From: Felis catus
Lineage: Eukaryota
Reading direction: 5' to 3'
Assembly (NCBI RefSeq): GCF_018350175.1
Contig: NC_058382.1
Span: forward strand, 8,680,001-8,744,000
DNA length: 64,000 bases
Position 1 is the stretch's first letter. Every line of letters begins with the position of its first letter. Both the position numbers and the translations under genes were made by a program. Under the pieces are notes generated by a model that had not been told where the DNA came from, ran no database searches, and saw only the letters and a program-made list of their open reading frames with translations. This document shows positions 9,213 to 60,658 of the stretch, piece after piece.

Positions 9213-9352
9213 NNNNNNNNNNNNNNNNNNNNNNNNNNNNNNNNNNNNNNNNNNNNNNNNNNNNNNNNNNNNNNNNNNNNNNNNNNNNNNNNNNNNNNNN
9301 NNNNNNNNNNNNNNNNNNNNNNNNNNNNNNNNNNNNNNNNNNNNNNNNNNNN
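9213..9352. other. Assembly gap (140 N) covering the KCNA7 start codon
   Basis: Run of N inside a GC-rich CpG island; coding sequence resumes at (F)[11 protein letters not shown]. Confidence 0.99.
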
Positions 9353-11576
9353 TCCCGGACACGCTGCTAGGGGACCCGGCGCGCCGGGGCCGCTTCTACG
9401 ACTGCGCGCGCCGCGAGTACTTCTTTGACCGGCACCGGCCCAGCTTCGACGCGGTGCTCTACTACTACCAGTCCGGCGGGCGGCTGCGGCGGCCGGCGCA
9501 CGTGCCGCTCGACGTCTTCCTGGAGGAGGTGGCCTTTTACGGGCTGGGCGCGGCGGCGCTCGCGCGCCTGCGCGAGGACGAGGGCTGCCCCTTGCCGCCC
9601 GAGCGCCCCCTGCCCCGCCGCGCCTTCGCGCGCCAGCTCTGGCTGCTCTTCGAGTTCCCCGAGAGTTCGCAGGCCGCGCGCGTGCTCGCCGTCGTCTCCG
9701 TGCTCGTCATCCTCGTCTCCATCGTCGTCTTCTGCCTCGAGACGCTGCCCGACTTCCGCAACGACCGCGACAACCCGGGGCTCGCTGCGGTGGCGGCTGC
9801 CGGCCCGGTGAGGGGGCGTGTCCTGGGTGGAGAGGGGCGGGGCTTGGGAGGAGCTGAGCGGGGTCCACGGGGATCTGGCCAATTACAAGACGGGGGTGAG
9901 GGGCACTGGGAGGCGGGGCCTCTCGGGAAGGTGGGGCCTGGCTATGGGCGGGCGGGGCATTGGGGGGGCTTGTTGGAGGAGTGGCCAATCACAGGTGGGG
10001 CAGGAGGCTTGAGAGGTGGGCAACCCAGGGACCGGGCCTGACCAGGGGAATTTACCTTTAAAAGCTGGGCTGGGGGCCGGGAAGGGATAGCTTAATGGAG
10101 GCGGGGCCTGAGGATATGAATAGGAGGACCTTCCTATCACTGGGTGGGGTTGAGGCAGGTGAGAAACGGGCTGGCCGAGGGCGGGAAGACAGGTACGTTA
10201 AGAAATGAAGCAAGGGAGGAGAGACTGAAGAATCAGGGGTCCGTGCGGCTGGCAGCAAGCAAGAGAAGGATGGGCTGGAGGGAGCTGGAGACAGAAGAGT
10301 GAGGCCTGAAGGCTGAGGTAGGAGCAACCCAGCACAAAAAAAAGTCAGGCTGAGGGCCATGAGGGCAGGGTTTGGTGTTCAGAGAAGGCCTTTAACCATT
10401 AGAGTCTGGGCTGGGGGTAGAGAGGGCAGAGCACGAGGAAGTGGGACCAGGGTGGCGACACTCCCCATCTGGAAAATCAGTGCTGCGGTGGGACTTTGGG
10501 AAGGAAGAGACTGAGTCTCACTCAGGCACCATTCTAGGAGGCCCCACCAGTGAAGGATCAGGGACCCTGCAGTCAGCCACGCAGGGAGGATCCCCAGGGT
10601 TCTGGAAAGGAGTCTAGGACAGCTGGGGCACTGGAGGCCTGGGAGCAGTGACCACTGACCAGTTTGCACAGAAGCAGTTGGACATTTAAACCATAAATGT
10701 GGCCGTTCTAGTGTGTTCCAGTCTTGGTGTGGTCCTCTCTGACCCCCTTCCTCCCTGCAGTTCCCTGCTCGGCTGAATGGCTCCAGCCCAGTGCCTGGAA
10801 CCCTGTCTCGCATGCCCTTCGATGACCCGTTCTTTATGGTGGAGACGTTGTGCATCTGTTGGTTCTCCTTTGAGCTACTGGTGCGCCTGGCGACCTGCCC
10901 AAGCAAGGCGGCCTTTTTCAAGAACGTGATGAACCTCATCGATTTCGTGGCCATCCTCCCCTACTTTGTGGCGCTAGGCACCGAGCTAGCCAGGCAACGG
11001 GGCGTGGGCCAGCCGGCCATGTCACTGGCCATACTACGAGTTATCCGACTGGTGCGCGTCTTCCGGATCTTCAAGCTGTCCCGGCACTCAAAGGGCCTGC
11101 AGATCTTGGGCCAGACACTACGGGCCTCCATGCGTGAGCTGGGTCTCCTCATCTTCTTCCTCTTCATCGGTGTGGTTCTCTTCTCCAGCGCGGTCTACTT
11201 TGCGGAGGCCGACCGGGAAGATTCCCATTTCACCAGCATCCCTGAGTCCTTTTGGTGGGCGGTGGTCACCATGACCACAGTCGGCTATGGAGACATGGCA
11301 CCCGTCACTGTGGGTGGCAAGATAGTGGGCTCTCTGTGCGCCATCGCTGGTGTGCTGACCATTTCCCTGCCTGTGCCGGTCATTGTCTCCAACTTCAGCT
11401 ACTTTTACCACCGGGAGACAGAGGGCGAAGAGGCCGGAATGTACAGCCATGTGGACACGCAGCCCTGTGGCCCACTGGAGGGCAAGGTCAATGGGGGGTT
11501 GGTGGACGGAGAGATGCCTGAGCTACCACCTCCACTCTGGGCCCCCCCTGGGAAACACATGGTCACCGAAGTGTGA
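9213..11576 (+). CDS. KCNA7: Voltage-gated potassium channel Kv1.7 (Shaker family), 2 coding exons; ATG lies in the N gap
   Basis: Exon 1 runs from the gap to 9807 (T1 domain [23 protein letters not shown]1; donor GTGAGG at 9808). Exon 2 is 10761-11576 (acceptor CTGCAG): S4 [20 protein letters not shown], pore [12 protein letters not shown] motif, PDZ-type tail VTEV. The intron in the S1-S2 linker is diagnostic of KCNA7 among KCNA genes. Confidence 0.97.
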
Positions 11577-44900: not shown

Positions 44901-47900
44901 GGTATCAGAGTCAGGCTCCCCAGGCCGGGCAAAACCAGGTCCGGGAGGCGCAGGACTGCTTGCCGCCCGCACAGGGCTGTGGCAGCTGGCCCAGAACCTA
45001 GGCCATCATCTCAGGAGGAAAGCAGCCGCCCGGAGAAATGTGGCAGCAAGGTTTAGAAACATGGCAGCGGGGCAGACAGCAGCTGGTGTTAGAAAGGTAG
45101 CTGCAGAGTCCAAAGGGTAGAGGAAGGAGACAGCAGGTGACAAATTTATAGTGAAAGCATCGGAAGCAAGGCAGCGGGCGCGGAAGAATGTGGCAATGAG
45201 AACAGTAAAAGAAGCATCCAGTGGGAGGAATTAGCAGCAGAAGGAAGAAATAACGGGAGAAGGCGACAGGCGGGTTGGCAAGACGGAAGTGGCAGGAAAC
45301 ACAGAAACAAGGCAGCACGTTGGAGAAATGCTAAGGGCGGGAAAGCAAGGCAGCGGGGGACACAGAGACAGGACCGTGTGACATTCATGGTTATAGGTAA
45401 GAGAAAGGAGGCAGTGGGTTGGGAACCAGGGTAGCGGTTATAGAAAGGAAGCAAGGTTTTCAGTTAGCAGTAATCGCTCCTCTAATAAACCTCATTGGCT
45501 ACGATACCGCCACTGCGCAAAGCTAGAAAGGAAGCGAGGCACAGGGAAAATGTAACAGCGATGGACAAAGAGTGTGGTGGGAATAACTAGCAGCACGTGG
45601 AGAAATACGGCAGCGGGGGAGAAATTAGCAGCAGGTACCGAAACAGGGTGGAAGAACTGAGGCTTTAAGCCCCGACTGCTGCCTGCGGGTGGGCGAGCCA
45701 CCGAGGCTGAGCCCAGGGAAGTGTGGCCAAAAGCCTGAGTCTTCCTGTGGGCCCCCCCAGGTGTATTTCGGACGCTGGCTGATCGAGGGGGGCCCCCTGG
45801 TGGTGCTCCTGGACGTGGGGGCCTCAGCCTGGGCCCTGGAGCGCTGGAAGGGGGAGCTCTGGGACACCTGCAACATCGGGGTGCCTTGGTACGACCGTGA
45901 GGCCAACGACGCTGTCCTTTTTGGCTTCCTCACCACCTGGTTCCTGGGTGAGGTAGGCCCCATTGCTGGTCGCCATGTCACTCCTGACCCGGGCCCCAAC
46001 CTAGGATGGCCGTTAGTCCCTGCCAGAGGGGGCGGGGTAGGAAGGGGTGGCCGGCCGGGGGCCTTGGGGTGGCTGGCTTCTCCCAAGGCATTCTGGGATT
46101 GTAGGTCCTTTTCCAAGCCCTAGCTCTGACCTTTGGGAACACAGACACCCAGGGGCCCAGAGGCTCAAACTCCCAACCCCAGCTTCATTCATTCTAATTT
46201 TCTCAGTAGAGAAATTTTGAACTGTTAGCTTTGGGGGGTGCTGGCCGGGCTAGAGGGCTTGCACCAGGACATTCTGGGAGTTGTAGTTCTGTAGTCTGAT
46301 AGTGGCTGGACTTAGCTCTCAGAGGGGGCCCTGGACGGTTGGGGGGTCTCCAGCCTATATGAGAACCAGGGATCCTGGTTCTGACCCCCTTTTAGGTTTT
46401 AAAAGGCTGAAGAAACTTCACATCTCCTGCCCCAGGGAAACCAGTTTACGAATGGGCCAGTCGTAGGGCATTCTGGGAGTTGTAGTCCTTTAGTCAGTAT
46501 TGGATGCAGCTCCACTCTTGATTGAGACAAAAGGCTCTCCAGGAATTGCGTCCGGGACTTGGGGACACTACAACTTCAGACCTTCCACTTCAGCCCTGCT
46601 GGCACTTAGAAGGTGGGGCCAACCTCTCCACCGCCCCCGGCTCCCATCAGCCTTGAAGGATGGGGTCAGCTGGCCTGGCGACCCGGAGATGTACAGTTCC
46701 TTGTTCTAGGGGAATTGCAGTGGGCTACCATCCACTCTGTGCAAGAATGACGCTAGATTTACCTCTCCCCTGCTTCCCTGTCCACCTTGGGGATTGTTGG
46801 TTGTCCGCACAACACACGTGGAGACACAGTGGCCCTCTTCCTGTTGCCCCATAGTTCCTGGCCCAGAACGAGGAGAAGCCACACGTGGTTGCACACTTCC
46901 ACGAGTGGTTGGCGGGCATTGGCCTCTGCCTGTGCCGGGCCCGGCGGCTGCCCGTGGCCACAATCTTCACCACCCACGCCACACTGCTGGGACGCTACCT
47001 GTGTGCCGGTGCCGTGGACTTCTATAACAACCTGGAGAATGTGAGCCGGGAACGTGTGGCAGATGGGGGCTGTGAGTGGTTCGGGACAGCCCAAAGCTGT
47101 CCGGGAAGCCCAGGGGCGGGGGGATCAAGCTTCCTCTTCTCCCGTGACCCAGGGGTCCAAGTCCTCCACCCCCTCCTCCCTCTGACAAAGGAGTTCAGCT
47201 TCCAACCCCAGCCACCTCCGGGACCCCGGAGTCTGGGCTGCCTGAGTCTTCTCCCCAGTTCTTCTAACCTGACTGCCCTCCCTTCCCACCCAGTTCAATG
47301 TGGACAAGGAAGCAGGGGAGAGGCAAATCTATCACCGCTACTGCATGGAGCGGGCAGCGGCCCACTGCGCTCATATCTTTACTACTGTGTCCCAGATTAC
47401 TGCCATCGAGGCTCAGCACCTGCTCAAGAGGAAACCAGGTAAGGAATAGGCTGGGGTCCCTAGACATGAATGAGGCAGTCTGTGCTCAGGCCGATACTTA
47501 GCTGGTTTTTTTTAACTGTAGAGAGCAAAGAACTACACCCCCCAGCCAGCCCTAAGTTGATGACCTGAATAGGGAGCTGCCTGGTTATACGCCCTAGAGG
47601 CTAATGGGAGGTGTAGTTCCTTTGACATTCATTTCAAAATGGTAAAGTTACCTTATCGGCTAATGTAGTTACTGGTCTTCTGAAAGGGAATGGAGTTTCA
47701 CTGGGTTTTGATTTTGAGAAGAGTGGTGTTGGAATCCGTTATTCTTTTTTTTTTTTTTTTTTTTTAAGTTATTTATTTTGAGAGAGAAAGAGTGAGAGAG
47801 CATGGACAGGGGGAGGGACAGAGAGAGAGAGAATCCCAAGCAGAGCCCGACGCGGGGCTCGATCCCATGAACCGTGAGATCATGACATGAACCCAAACCA

Positions 47901-50900
47901 AGTTGGATGCTCAACCGACTGAGCCACCCAGACACCCCTGGAATCAGTTATTCTTTTCGGGTTATAGCACCCATTCTCAATGGGTGTATTGTGAGAACTA
48001 CAATTCCCAGGAGGCCTTTGGCTAGCCGGCTCCTTCTACTCCTGGAGCTGATGGTGGTTATAATTTTTCATTGATGTATTTTAATTTCAAGGAGGATAGG
48101 AAATGATCGGGACCCTAAAAGAGGCTTGAAGGTTGAGGGTATATTCTGGGAGAAGCAGGATGGGGATGTTTAAATCATCCCCAGTATAGGGTGGGATAGG
48201 GGAAACAAAAGAACTACAACTCCCAGAAGCCCCAAGGTAGTTCATTTCCCTGTGTGGTTAGCCATTTGCAGGGGCTGCTGGGAGTTGTGGTCGTGCTTGT
48301 GAACATAAGCAAGTGACTTGGGGCAAGAAGGCCTCTGAGTGGCAGGGCAGCGGGGCCACCAAGGGAGCTTCTAAAACTAAGAGATTGTGACAGGAAAGGA
48401 GTCTTTCCTTTGTTTATTCATTCAACCACACTGACGCGTATGAATAGATGAAGATATGAAACATGGACCTTCTCCCCACAAATCCCAGATATCGTGACCC
48501 CCAATGGACTGAATGTGAAGAAGTTCTCTGCCATGCATGAGTTCCAGAACCTCCATGCTCAGAGCAAGGCTCGAATCCAGGAGTTTGTGCGGGGCCATTT
48601 TTATGGGTACGTGGACCAGGTACCTAGGTCTTGGGAGAGGAAGGGGTTGGGAACCCAACTCATGAGTGTAAGAGATGGGATAGCTGGGGGCTCAGCCTCT
48701 TCCATTCCTGAGCACCAGAACAATGGTGGAGTATTCAAGTATTGATCCCCATCTAGGGAGAAGAGAACTTCAACTCCCAGGAGCTCCCATGATGCCTCTG
48801 TACTGCCTAAGACGCTCTTTGCCCCTGTAGCTTCTGGGGTTTGTAGTTTCAAGGCCAGGGCTAGCGGGTCCCCACCCTTGGCTTCACCAAGGTGGCTTCA
48901 CCACCATGCCTTATGGCTTTTTTAGGCACCTGGACTTCAACTTGGACAAGACCTTGTATTTCTTTATCGCCGGCCGCTACGAGTTCTCTAACAAGGGGGC
49001 CGATGTCTTCCTAGAGGCCTTGGCCCGGCTCAACTATCTACTCAGAGTAAGGCCTGGGCTTTGAGAAGACAAAAAGAGGAAAAGGAAATCCGCACATAAC
49101 TGGGGAGGGCGGGGGCGGGAAGTAGGGAAACCCCGTGTGTGAAGGGAAAGTGTAGAGACCCAGAAAGAAGACCAGAGTCCCAGTGGGGATGATGACTCTA
49201 ATTCTCCTTGACCGGAAGGAGCATGGCAGGGCCATAGTGGTCTTGATGGGTGGAAAAGGGTAGGTGGCTTCAGCCTTCTCGCGGGTGATCCTGACCCCCT
49301 CCCCCCACCCCACGCCTTTTCCTCTGCCCAGGTGAACGGCAGTGAGCAGACAGTGGTCGCCTTCTTCATCATGCCGGCTCGGACCAACAATTTCAACGTG
49401 GAAACCCTCAAAGGCCAAGCTGTGCGCAAGCAGCTTTGGTCAGCAGCCCTCGGCCCAGGATCCCTGCCATTCCCGCTCCCAGCCATGCCCTTCGGGAGGC
49501 TCAGTTTTGTTATCTGGAACACGAGCGGTTTGCCCCCCAAAAACTCGTAGTGAAGTCACTTGCTTAAGACGCCTCTAGGTCAGGGGCAGTAAGGAGTCGC
49601 ACACAGGACAAGTGTGACCGTACAACCAGGGCCCTGACATCAAACTGGCGAGGTCCCACTTGGGCCACTGACCCTTGGTGGCTTTGTGATAATTTCCTCA
49701 TCTGCAAGAGCCATGCATTAGCCATCAGATAGTCACTGAGCACCTACCGTGGACCAGGCGCTGTTCCAGGCCCTGGGGACGCAGCTGTAAATGAGGACGA
49801 TAAAATCCCTGCCCTCACCGAGCTCCCATTCTAGAGAGTTCTATAGAAAGTGCTCTGGGGTGCCTGGTTGGCTCAGTTAGAGCATGTGGCTCTTGGTCTT
49901 GGGGTTGTAAGTTCGAGCCCCGTGTTGGGTGTAGAGACGACCGCTTAAAAATAGACTCTTTAAGACAACAACAACAACAAAAAGAAAGTGCTCTGACAAG
50001 AAAATAAAGCAGGACTGGAATGCGAGACAGGACATGGAATGGACAGGCCACACTGAGAAAGTTGCCATGGGGTAGAGACCAGTAGAAGAAATGAGGGAGG
50101 GAGCCCTGTGTGTATCTGGGGAATAGCATTTCAGGCAGAGGAACACAGATGCAAAGGCCCTGAGGTATGTCTGAGAAACCACAGGGAGACCAGCGCGGCT
50201 GGAGCAGGGCGCTTAAGGGAGATGGGGTAGAAAATGAGGCCAGAGCTATGAGAAGATTAGGATTAGAGGAATGTCATCGAGGCTGCAGGGTGTCACTAGT
50301 TGCTAGCTTCACTTGTGCACATAAAATTTCCTCTCTCGGAACATCGTTCTCCCTTTTTATAACATGGGGCTTAGCATGGCCACCACCAGGACTAGTGCAC
50401 GTCCTAATAATAGCTGACATTTCTGGAAGGTTTGCTGTGTGCCAGGCACTGTGCGTTGTTTGTCGTGACTTCATCAAGTTTTCCCTGCAGACCTCTGAGG
50501 TCGGTTCTATTTTTATCCCCGTCTGAGAGATGAGTCACCAAAGTCAGAGAGGGAAGGCCACCTGTCCCCCGCCACACAGCTGATGAGGGGCACAGGGGAT
50601 TCGAGCCTTTCAGGGCCTGTCTCCCAGGTCCCCGTCCTCCAGCTCCAAGTCCCCAGGGCCTCTCCGCCCAGACCTCAGTGTAGCAGCTGACAATAAATGG
50701 CAGGTGGCATATATGTGATGCTGTGTCTCTGCCCCTTCTAGGGATACGGCCAACACCGTGAAAGAGAAGTTCGGAAGGAAGCTTTATGAGTCCTTGCTGG
50801 TGTGAGTGTCCCTCCCCCAGCCCCGCATCCTCCTGGGCCCTGACTCCACGGATCACCCATTCCCAGATGCATACCCTGTCACCTTGCAGGGGGAGCCTCC

Positions 50901-53900
50901 CGGACATGAACAAGATGCTGGACAAGGAGGACTTCACTATGATGAAGAGAGCTATATTTGCCACGCAGGTACGGTCTGGGGCCCCGAACAGAGACATGGC
51001 GATGCCCAGCACCCGCCCCGGGGGCAGCTTGCTGTCTTAGCTCTGACCCCAGAGATTGCTGGGGGCTCCGCGTCACCGGCACCCTTATCAGGGAATCAAT
51101 TGATTTTTTTTAAGGCTTATTTATTTTTGAGAGAGAGAGAGAGAGAGAGAGAGAGGAAGACAGAGCGGGGGAGGGGGAGGGGCAGAGAGAGAGGGAGACA
51201 GAATCCGAAGCAGGCTCCAGGCTCTGAGCTGTCAGCCCAGAGCCCGACTACACTGGGCTGGAACCCACCAGCTGTTAAGATCGTGACCTGAGCTGAAGTT
51301 GGATGCTTAACGGACTGAGCCCCCCCCCCGCCCCCCCCCCCCCGAGGCGCCCCCCCCCCCAGTGACTTATTCTGCTACAGGGGCTGCTAGGAGTTGTACT
51401 TTTTTTTTTTAATTTGTAATTTCGTTGAGCCACCGGGGTCAAAAGATGAAAGAGAACTTTAGGAAGTCAACAAAGCCCACAGGAGGAGAATTACAAGCCC
51501 CCGCTGTCCCTGGGTCTTGCTGCTGACTAGTTTCATACTCATTAGAGCCAGAAGGTTTTAGCTAAAACACTAGCCGTTACCTGAAGAGCATTGAAAACTC
51601 TCAGCAGCTGCTGTTTTTCTTATCCCATAGGCCGTGTGTCTTAGTCCCCAGACATTCCTGGCAGTTGTAGCTTCTTTAGATTCCGGAGGTTAATGGAATT
51701 CGGTGGATGGGAAACCTTAGAAGAATGTGGCAATAACAAAATGAGGACTACAAGTCCCAGCAGCCCCTGCTTCAGGCATGCTTCCCTTGCCCCAGAGGCT
51801 CCTGGGAGGGAGAGTTCTTTGATTCTCTGGGGTCAGGAATCTTTGGTACCTGTGGTCAGGGTGGGTGAGCCACTTCCCGGCGAATGGAAACCTAGGTACC
51901 CACGCTGCACAAATGAGGTGTGATGTGCTTTGGGCCAAACTACAATTTCCTTTTTTCTTTTTTTAAGTTTATGTATTTATTTTGAGAGAGAGAGAGGGAG
52001 AGAGGGGATCCCAAGCAGGCCCCGCGCTTCCTGCACGGAGCCTGACATGGGGCTCGAAGCCAGAAGCCGTGAGATCATAATAAAGAGCCAAAATAAAGAG
52101 ATGACTGAGCCACGCTGTGACCCCAGATTACAATTTCTAATAGTCCCTATGGCAGTCAGCCTCACTGAGGATGTGTATGCATTGCCACGGGGCTGCTGGG
52201 AGTTGTAGTTTCCTGAGCCCCTGGAGCTGACTGAAGGCGAGTAGAACTTTTAATGAGATGGAAGAGTTACAAATAACTACATATCCCAGCAGCCCGTGGG
52301 ATTTCCTAGCTCTCGCCCCTCCAGTCACTCTTGGGAATTGTGGTTTCTCTGGGCCTTGGGTGGGAGCGGAAGTGGAGGGAATTACAGGATGGAGAGTAAA
52401 GGGAACTTGGAAAGAAGGCAAGACAGGCTTTTCATAAGAGAACTACAACTTCCAGCAGCCCCTGAAGCTTGCTGCCATATTGACCAAGTCTCTGCCCCCC
52501 ATTGACTTGGGGGAATTTTAGTTCCTTTGGGTTTCTTTGATGATGGAGCCCAGAGTACAGAACCCAATAACTACAACTCCCGGTCGTCAGGGGAGGCAGG
52601 TTAATGCTGGCTTTGCCTCAAAGACAAATGGGAATTGTAGTTTCTTTTCAGCTCATGGTGTGTTTTTGTTTAGTTGGTTATTTTTTATGTTTATTTATTT
52701 TTGAGAGAGAGGGAGGGCTGTCTGGCTGTCAGCCCAGAACCCGATATGGGGCTTGAACCCATGAACCGTGAGATCATGACCTGAGCCGAAGTCGGACACT
52801 TAACCGACTGAGTCACCCAGGTGCCCCTCAGCTCATGGTGTTCAAACAGAAAAGTGAGCCTTTACAGAGAGAGCCAAGGAGGATATCTATGACTCCTCTT
52901 TTTTTTTTTTTTTAAGTTTATTTAGTTATTTTGAGAGAGAGAGTGAGAGCGCAAGCAAGGGAGGGCCAGAGAGAGAGAATCCCAAGCAGGCTCTGCACTG
53001 ACAGTGGAGACCCAACTCGGGGCTCGAACTCACGAACCAACTGTGAGCTCATGACCGGAGCCGAAATCGAGAGTCGGCCATTCCACCTACTGAGCCCCCC
53101 AGGCGCCCCAGATATCTACAGCTTCTAATCTCTTGGGCTTGTGTCCCCACAACCTGGTGGGAATTGTGACCTCCTCCCGGGTCAGCGTGGCTCACAGGGA
53201 ATGAAGGAGCCCTCTGTCCCTTCTCTGACCCCCATCCCTCTTGTGGCCCCTGCAGCGACAGTCTTTCCCCCCTGTGTGCACCCACAATATGCTGGACGAC
53301 TCCTCGGATCCTATCCTGACCACCATCCGTCGAATCGGACTCTTCAATAGTAGTGCTGACAGGGTCAAGGTGAGGGCAATGGCCAGGCTGGGTCAAGCAT
53401 GGAGGGGTGGGGGGTGGAGGTAGGGGGAGCTGGGCCTCACGTCCCCCGTCTCCCCTGGTTTATTAAGGGATCGCTATGTTTAGAAAGGGCCTTAGCACTT
53501 TAAGCGGACAGACTTGGATTCAGTGCTTTGTCCTACCGCTGACTTGTGTGACTTTAGACAGGCTTTTCGCCCTCTCTGGGCCCCTCTGGGATCCCAGGGA
53601 GTTTGGGCTGAGCTCTTCTTTTTCACTGCTAGGTGATTTTCCACCCAGAGTTCCTCTCCTCCACGAGCCCCCTGCTCCCCGTGGATTATGAGGAATTTGT
53701 CCGTGGCTGCCACCTGGGGGTCTTCCCCTCCTACTATGAGCCTTGGGGCTACACGCCGGGTGAGTGCAGCATGGTGGTCGGCTCCTGGTCAGACGGGGCA
53801 CCAACCCCGGGCACGGCACTTGCCCGCTCTGTGCCCCAGGCTCGCCTTTGCAAAACCGGGACGATGGCCACAGTCTGTTGGCCTGCAGCATGTGTTTCTG

Positions 53901-59306: not shown

Positions 59307-60658
<1,352 letters not shown>

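Follow-up and report, generated by a model that had tools for sequence, protein, structure and literature searches.

A Putative Intragenic Array of THAP11/ZNF143-Type Sites in the Introns of GYS1 in Felis catus

Introduction

In this study, we analyzed a 64-kb stretch of the Felis catus genome (RefSeq assembly GCF_018350175.1, contig NC_058382.1, positions 8,680,001 to 8,744,000 of the forward strand), which is referred to here as the window and in whose own numbering all positions are given. We found a dense group of motifs of the THAP11/ZNF143 type in introns 3, 5, 6, and 10 of GYS1, which encodes glycogen synthase. With moderate confidence, we regard it as an ancient and conserved array of about 25 putative THAP11/ZNF143 docking sites, which are mostly organized in about 10 modules. 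The motif, known as M4, Ronin, TBS, or SBS2, is regarded as among the most position-restricted promoter motifs of mammals, and a promoter is described as having one or two copies of it at about 80 bp upstream of the start site. With its roughly 25 copies deep in a metabolic gene and its strict inverted-pair unit, a conserved array like this one is at odds with this promoter-restricted picture.

Results

A preliminary description of the window had proposed that the GYS1 introns hold more than 20 SBS motifs. A 25-column position weight matrix (PWM) was made from 15 core matches with at most one mismatch, and a score of at least 12 was taken as the threshold for a site. As shown in Table 1, the sites are concentrated in GYS1: 25 of them were detected across 46,085-52,644, of which 10 were not part of the matrix training set, and the other 57 kb of the window contained only five, of which four were weak. 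The exact 12-base core, ACTACANNTCCCAG, was present in eight copies in the window, compared to a mean of 0.01 and a maximum of 1 in shuffled sequences. Seven of these copies lie at 46.2-52.3 kb in the GYS1 introns, and the remaining one is in intron 2 of FTL. When up to one mismatch was allowed, 15 of the 16 matches in the window were inside 46-53.3 kb. At a PWM score of at least 10, 34 sites were observed, compared to about 8 per 64 kb in Markov-simulated sequence. The ACTACA..TCCCA core had no match across 448 kb of unrelated eukaryotic loci. These results bear out the proposed array, and both the core search and the PWM agree that the copy in FTL intron 2 (59929) is the only other good one in the window.

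The coordinates given in the preliminary description were mostly retained. Sites scoring at least 12 were found at 23 of the 26, and the other three proved vestigial (46567, score 5.2; 46709, below 0; 53158, 9.2). Two sites, at 48043 and 51794, had been overlooked, and the entries at 51938 and 52126 are a single site that was split by a carnivore short interspersed element (SINE) with its target-site duplication. SINEs of the feliform, transfer RNA-derived type occur in the window. The exons of GYS1 were located singly by translation and were left unjoined; they are encoded on the + strand, and introns 3, 5, 6, and 10 contain the sites, as had been stated. The array sites are 4-11 kb inside GYS1 and are not promoter-proximal, and only the FTL copy is embedded in a CpG island.

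The motif had been assigned to the SBS2 of ZNF143/THAP11, and this assignment was right. SBS2 has been reported to be 25 bp long, with ACTACAN followed by an 18-bp Staf site, and the THAP11 site has been given as ACTACANNTCCCA (PMC3627581). The Ronin-binding motif is CTGGGARWTGTAGTY (PMC10329844). The consensus of the array is RGAACTACAACTCCCAGCAGCCCC(TG), and its RGAACTACAACTCCCAGCAGCCCC portion fits the 25-bp SBS2 as well as ACTACANNTCCCA and CTGGGARWTGTAGTY. Arms matching ACTACA, two free bases, and TCCCA(G) were found seven times exactly and 15 times with at most one mismatch in the region. An extended motif derived from chromatin immunoprecipitation (ChIP) reads aGgACTACAAyTCCCAG (bioRxiv 10.1101/2025.11.09.687492). 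The columns that our search left free follow this motif, the first free base being A and the second Y. After CAG, the arms have a variable base, then A, and then G or T. Both CAGCAGCC-type and AATGC-type arms occur. The Staf-type 3' half, AATG(C/T), was found in the intron 3 sites and at 51650, and most other arms have CAGVAGCC. The terminal GCG of the full 18-bp Staf half (…CCCAGAATGC…GCG) was present in none of the array sites.

We found that the unit of the array is not a single motif; it consists of two arms that face each other with their ACTACA ends outward. Along the array, sites on the two strands alternate. Among pairs in which both arms scored at least 12 and lay 45-70 bp apart, nine were convergent (+ then -), one was divergent, and none was on the same strand. 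Among 20,000 shuffles of orientation or random placements, none reached this pairing excess (P<5e-5). When both arms were required to score at least 5, 11 convergent pairs were found in the window, 10 in GYS1 and one in FTL intron 2. With the FTL pair counted in, the start-to-start spacing is 49-67 bp with a median of 60, and the outer spans are 74-92 bp. Of the inverted repeats that a repeat finder reported in the region, the best four are all such motif pairs. The inverted arms measure 18-21 nucleotides and are 80-90% complementary. One consensus fits every arm, and a private variant common to both arms was seen only in module 47529/47596. The arm spacings (modules within 47529-52644 and the FTL pair, 59877-59953) cluster at 49-53 bp and at 60-67 bp, two groups that differ by about one helical turn, and no spacing of 54-59 bp was observed. 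As the test for helical phasing was marginal (Rayleigh p of about 0.03-0.08, n=11), we make no claim of phasing.

Intron 3 was unlike the rest of the array, with three sites on the same strand at intervals of about 190 bp, which have the classical AATG(C/T) Staf half. Site c of this intron may have a vestigial + partner at 46412. In intron 10, a SINE may have separated the lone arm at 51379 from its partner. A long interrupted poly-C tract lies at the end of this SINE (51320-51361), directly upstream of the arm. We also observed a GCCAT/ATGGC (YY1-like) core in the interiors of three modules (48233-48270, 52464-52500, and 52149-52160), one of which reads GCCATATTG; about one such core is expected by chance.

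The sequences between the arms and between the modules were then compared. No pair of interiors or linkers was clearly above shuffles, in agreement with the earlier statement that the spacers are unrelated; two of 36 interior pairs reached a z of about 3.3, and interiors and linkers were otherwise dissimilar. Tandem Repeats Finder (TRF) detected no tandem array in the region, and a tandem repeat or minisatellite was ruled out on this result together with the unrelated linkers and interiors. The idea that the modules, or the three sites of intron 3, have a backbone in common was also rejected, since only about 20 extra bases are common to sites b and c. As interiors and linkers are unrelated, the modules do not form a tandem repeat and are not copies of a single long terminal repeat (LTR).

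Conservation in other mammals was assessed with genomic open reading frame (ORF) fragments in a protein collection, in which the GYS1 exon is 97-100% identical to that of the window and the reading continues into the intron. One fragment labelled Homo sapiens (P0315) was left out of the comparison. The right arm of the intron 6 module (48826-48850) was found in every fragment extending that far, which comprise at least seven orthologue ORF clusters. It reads LLGFVVS in P0151, P0152, and P0154, and ASGVCSF in P0158 and P0162/P0290. The reading in P0160 is ASGICSC, from which back-translation gives a perfect core, and the AAGTCSS of P0163 also corresponds to a perfect core. P0290 translates the whole of intron 6, and it aligns with the window only at the right arm and at a short left-arm block. 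P0271 retains the left arm, P0275 and P0273 have it with a small deletion, and in P0290 it is decayed.

In its upstream portion, intron 3 varies among the fragments by many insertions and deletions. Site a (46085-46109) was intact in P0298, P0299, P0300, P0313, P0322, and P0339; P0318 has lost it by deletion, and P0357, P0309, and P0310 have decayed copies. In Felis catus its core has a one-nucleotide deletion, compared to an intact core in at least six other mammalian fragments; on these sequences, a conserved site has been lost here in a lineage-specific manner. Site b was kept in P0339 and P0357. Single arms turn over, and deletion, decay, and SINE disruption were all observed. When exon 4 was used to scan metagenomes, the only matches were distant eukaryotic glycogen synthases of at most 82% identity, lacking the motif. 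These results give cross-species support, at four sites in introns 3 and 6, to the claim that the motif is kept while its surroundings diverge. Since these four sites are retained where the intron is barely alignable, the array appears to be ancient and partly constrained.

Several other features were identified in the window. At 11280-11393 on the + strand, presumably in KCNA7, the potassium-channel RNA editing signal RF00485 was matched strongly and over its full length (107 bits). In GYS1 intron 2, a match of about 77 bases to the U4 small nuclear RNA (45448-45524, - strand) scored 48.9, compared to a gathering threshold of 46, and it is probably a truncated pseudogene. A canonical iron-responsive element is present in the FTL 5' untranslated region (60539-60573, - strand), which confirms that FTL is on the - strand. 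A run of 140 N at 9213-9352 is an assembly gap or masked sequence.

Table 1. Sites and modules of the GYS1 array, the FTL pair, and GYS1 exons. Numbers after PWM are scores; distances in bp are from the start of one arm to that of the other.
Feature	Position	Strand or arms	Details
Intron 3 site a	46085..46109	-	PWM 14.1; Staf-type 3' half AATGC; 1-nt deletion in core here
Intron 3 site b	46266..46290	-	PWM 32.2; perfect core; AATG-type 3' half
Intron 3 site c	46465..46489	-	Perfect core; ~20 further ACTACA-side bases common with site b
Intron 5 convergent module	47529..47620	47529+ / 47596-, 67 bp	Rare CC at the two free positions (NN) in both arms
Intron 5 module	47994..48067	Left arm strong; right arm 48043- decayed	PWM
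Intron 5 module, best pair	48210..48294	60 bp	Arms 90% complementary; repeat finder and PWM
Intron 6 module	48764..48850		Mid-way in 318-bp intron; PWM and orthologue retention
Intron 10 lone arm	51379..51403	-	PWM 27.8; directly 3' of SINE insertion
Intron 10 single decayed site	51487..51511	+	PWM 19.4
Intron 10 decayed module	51588..51674	62 bp	Left arm PWM 8.3; right arm PWM 15.3
Intron 10 module	51744..51818	50 bp	PWM
Intron 10 SINE-split module	51936..52212	Right arm 52188 intact	Left arm cut by carnivore SINE (~51950-52123) with target-site duplication
Intron 10 module	52273..52347	50 bp	Repeat finder and PWM
Intron 10 module	52439..52525	62 bp	PWM
Intron 10 module	52567..52644	53 bp	Repeat finder and PWM
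Vestigial site near intron 10 3' end	53149..53173	-	PWM 9.2
FTL intron 2 pair	59877..59953	Strong - arm 59929, decayed + arm 59877, 52 bp	Inside CpG island
GYS1 exon 4	46855-47040	+	Translation
GYS1 exon 5	~47294-47439	+	Translation
GYS1 exon 6	~48488-48608	+	Translation
GYS1 exon 7	start ~48927	+	Translation
GYS1 exon 10	near 50.9 kb	+	Translation
GYS1 exon 11	start ~53255	+	Translation

Discussion

The array shows one arm sequence everywhere with little covariation between arms, a strict orientation and spacing, and retention in mammals. Together, these properties argue for a sequence-specific reader of the DNA rather than for neutral relics or RNA hairpins. The arms would then be kept because a sequence-specific protein reads them. 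The likeliest reader may be THAP11/Ronin with HCFC1, and ZNF143 could act on those arms whose 3' half is usable; RBPJ or Ikaros could be competitors. It has been reported that Ronin dimerizes and bridges DNA bearing its motif, and that ZNF143 does not bridge (PMC10329844). Intragenic ZNF143 can be an elongation roadblock or can start genic bidirectional transcription. A previous report also showed that SBS2 outside promoters is bound in vivo, MLT1J repeats being 89-fold enriched in ZNF143 peaks, all with SBS2 (PMC3627581). Taken together, these reports favor a multivalent docking array. On the basis of this published biochemistry, the GYS1 array could serve as a multivalent intragenic docking platform, which might either link GYS1 to the neighbouring housekeeping promoters of RUVBL2 and FTL or damp GYS1 elongation. 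An effect of the array on GYS1, RUVBL2, or FTL, including a role as the enhancer, hub, or factor sink proposed in the preliminary description, can only be inferred.

Several points weigh against a docking array of this kind. Its occupancy is a prediction from the motif, and most bound sites are located in CpG-island promoters, upstream of start sites by a fixed distance (PMC10329844). The CpG observed/expected ratio over the array is 0.22-0.43; being CpG-poor, the array is gene-body-like and not like a CpG island or promoter. The cross-species comparison consists of translated ORF fragments and covers four of the about 25 sites, in introns 3 and 6. An entirely intronic ORF of intron 10 had no relative in the protein collection, so that the largest cluster lies outside this comparison. 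Many arms are decayed, one is split by a SINE, and site a is damaged, which indicates that constraint is partial; not every copy of the array is constrained, and several arms are decaying or disrupted. In most arms, the THAP11 half is complete and the 3' half of the ZNF143 site is only degenerate, and the DNA-binding domain of ZNF143 does not bind the THAP11 site by itself (PMC3627581). Given these halves, "THAP11/Ronin-type" would be at least as apt a name for the array as "ZNF143-type".

A bound array would provide a natural equivalent to the synthetic 20-motif DNA with which Ronin assemblies have been studied. It would also be a locus at which to ask whether THAP11 multivalency organizes the housekeeping promoters of RUVBL2 and FTL, whether intragenic ZNF143/THAP11 throttles its host gene, and where the motif arose. 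If it is unbound, it would be a clean case of motif conservation that needs another reader.

A possible but rather unlikely alternative is that the modules represent the remains of an old palindromic element of about 80 bp, resembling a miniature inverted-repeat transposable element, or MITE, which carried the motif in its terminal inverted repeats, hopped locally, and is now mostly decaying. The inverted-repeat build of the modules and their narrow size range are consistent with such an element, and their 18-21-nucleotide, 80-90% complementary arms would be its terminal inverted repeats. The copies are dispersed over four GYS1 introns and FTL, and they form a gradient from perfect to vestigial. 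MLT1J is a precedent for a repeat carrying SBS2 (PMC3627581), and THAP11 itself is derived from a DNA transposon (PMC10329844). However, no target-site duplications were visible at the module edges, and the interiors and flanks were dissimilar, although great age could erase both. The arms are also much better kept than the interiors, and than the surrounding intron in other mammals. Neutral decay does not fit this pattern, and an element origin alone leaves the differential conservation unexplained. A mobile-element origin concerns provenance, and it need not exclude a later exaptation.

A more far-reaching idea, which we consider improbable, is that the modules are terminal-inverted-repeat relics of a P-element-like transposon ancestral to THAP11, which would have seeded the "hyperconserved" M4 promoter motif genome-wide. 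Arrays would then be local-hopping clusters later kept as natural multivalent scaffolds for Ronin, nucleating promoter assemblies. Frog genomes may harbor a closely similar palindromic repeat in abundance.

We consider it very unlikely that the modules act at the RNA level, as hairpins in the GYS1 pre-mRNA that affect splicing, editing, or the production of small RNAs. Folding z-scores of -4.5 or below were obtained for four of seven modules, all modules are intronic, and one lies mid-way in a 318-bp intron. This stability, however, comes from the 20-25-nucleotide arms alone, and the interiors are not self-complementary once 25-nucleotide arms are removed, by which a long hairpin or structured interior was ruled out. 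The arms keep one common sequence and show no covariation, and the three same-strand sites of intron 3 have no clear partners. No Rfam family matched in the array region. The same pair grammar has been reported in open chromatin, supported by ChIP, and this is a DNA-level property (PMC9358416). That the sites are fragments of MLT1J LTRs, a family that carries SBS2 and is bound by ZNF143 outside promoters, is extremely unlikely in spite of the enrichment mentioned above, since about 20 LTR copies within 7 kb are implausible, the modules span only 74-92 bp and lack common flanks when compared among themselves, and TRF and the repeat finder detected nothing beyond the arms.

Considered as a docking array, the GYS1 modules can be compared with known systems. 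In a TF-COMB analysis of open chromatin in human HepG2 cells, motif-derived THAP11-ZNF143 pairs were mostly in opposite orientation and favored a distance of about 61 bp, and overlap with ChIP peaks was more frequent for pairs of this kind (PMC9358416). The GYS1 modules are likewise opposite in orientation, and their spacing is similar; as the definition of distance in TF-COMB may differ, the match between 61 bp and our median of 60 bp is approximate. This pair grammar is an independent sign that the module may be a real binding unit. The TF-COMB report differs in being a one-paragraph human statistic, in which no array, conservation, or locus is described. As far as we found, that passage is the only prior mention of the pair module in the literature, and our literature search returned nothing linking GYS1 to ZNF143 or the motif and nothing specific on inverted-repeat or transposon links.

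The arms share with the classical SBS2/THAP11 site (M4, Ronin) the ACTACA, the two free bases, the TCCCAG, the degenerate Staf half, and the extended 5' AGR, and the FTL copy resembles classical promoter sites in its CpG-island location. In contrast to the promoter arrangement of the classical motif in CpG islands, the GYS1 sites are numerous, intragenic, and CpG-poor. Like the SBS2 borne by MLT1J, the GYS1 sites are outside promoters, and a repeat has been suggested as the source of motif copies; unlike MLT1J, the GYS1 array has no detectable LTR backbone, and its unit is a short inverted pair. The array also resembles homotypic transcription-factor clusters, in which a single motif is repeated many times over a few kb and individual copies turn over. 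It differs from them in that its motif exceeds 20 bp, follows a strict pair grammar, is intragenic, and belongs to a factor considered to be promoter-restricted.

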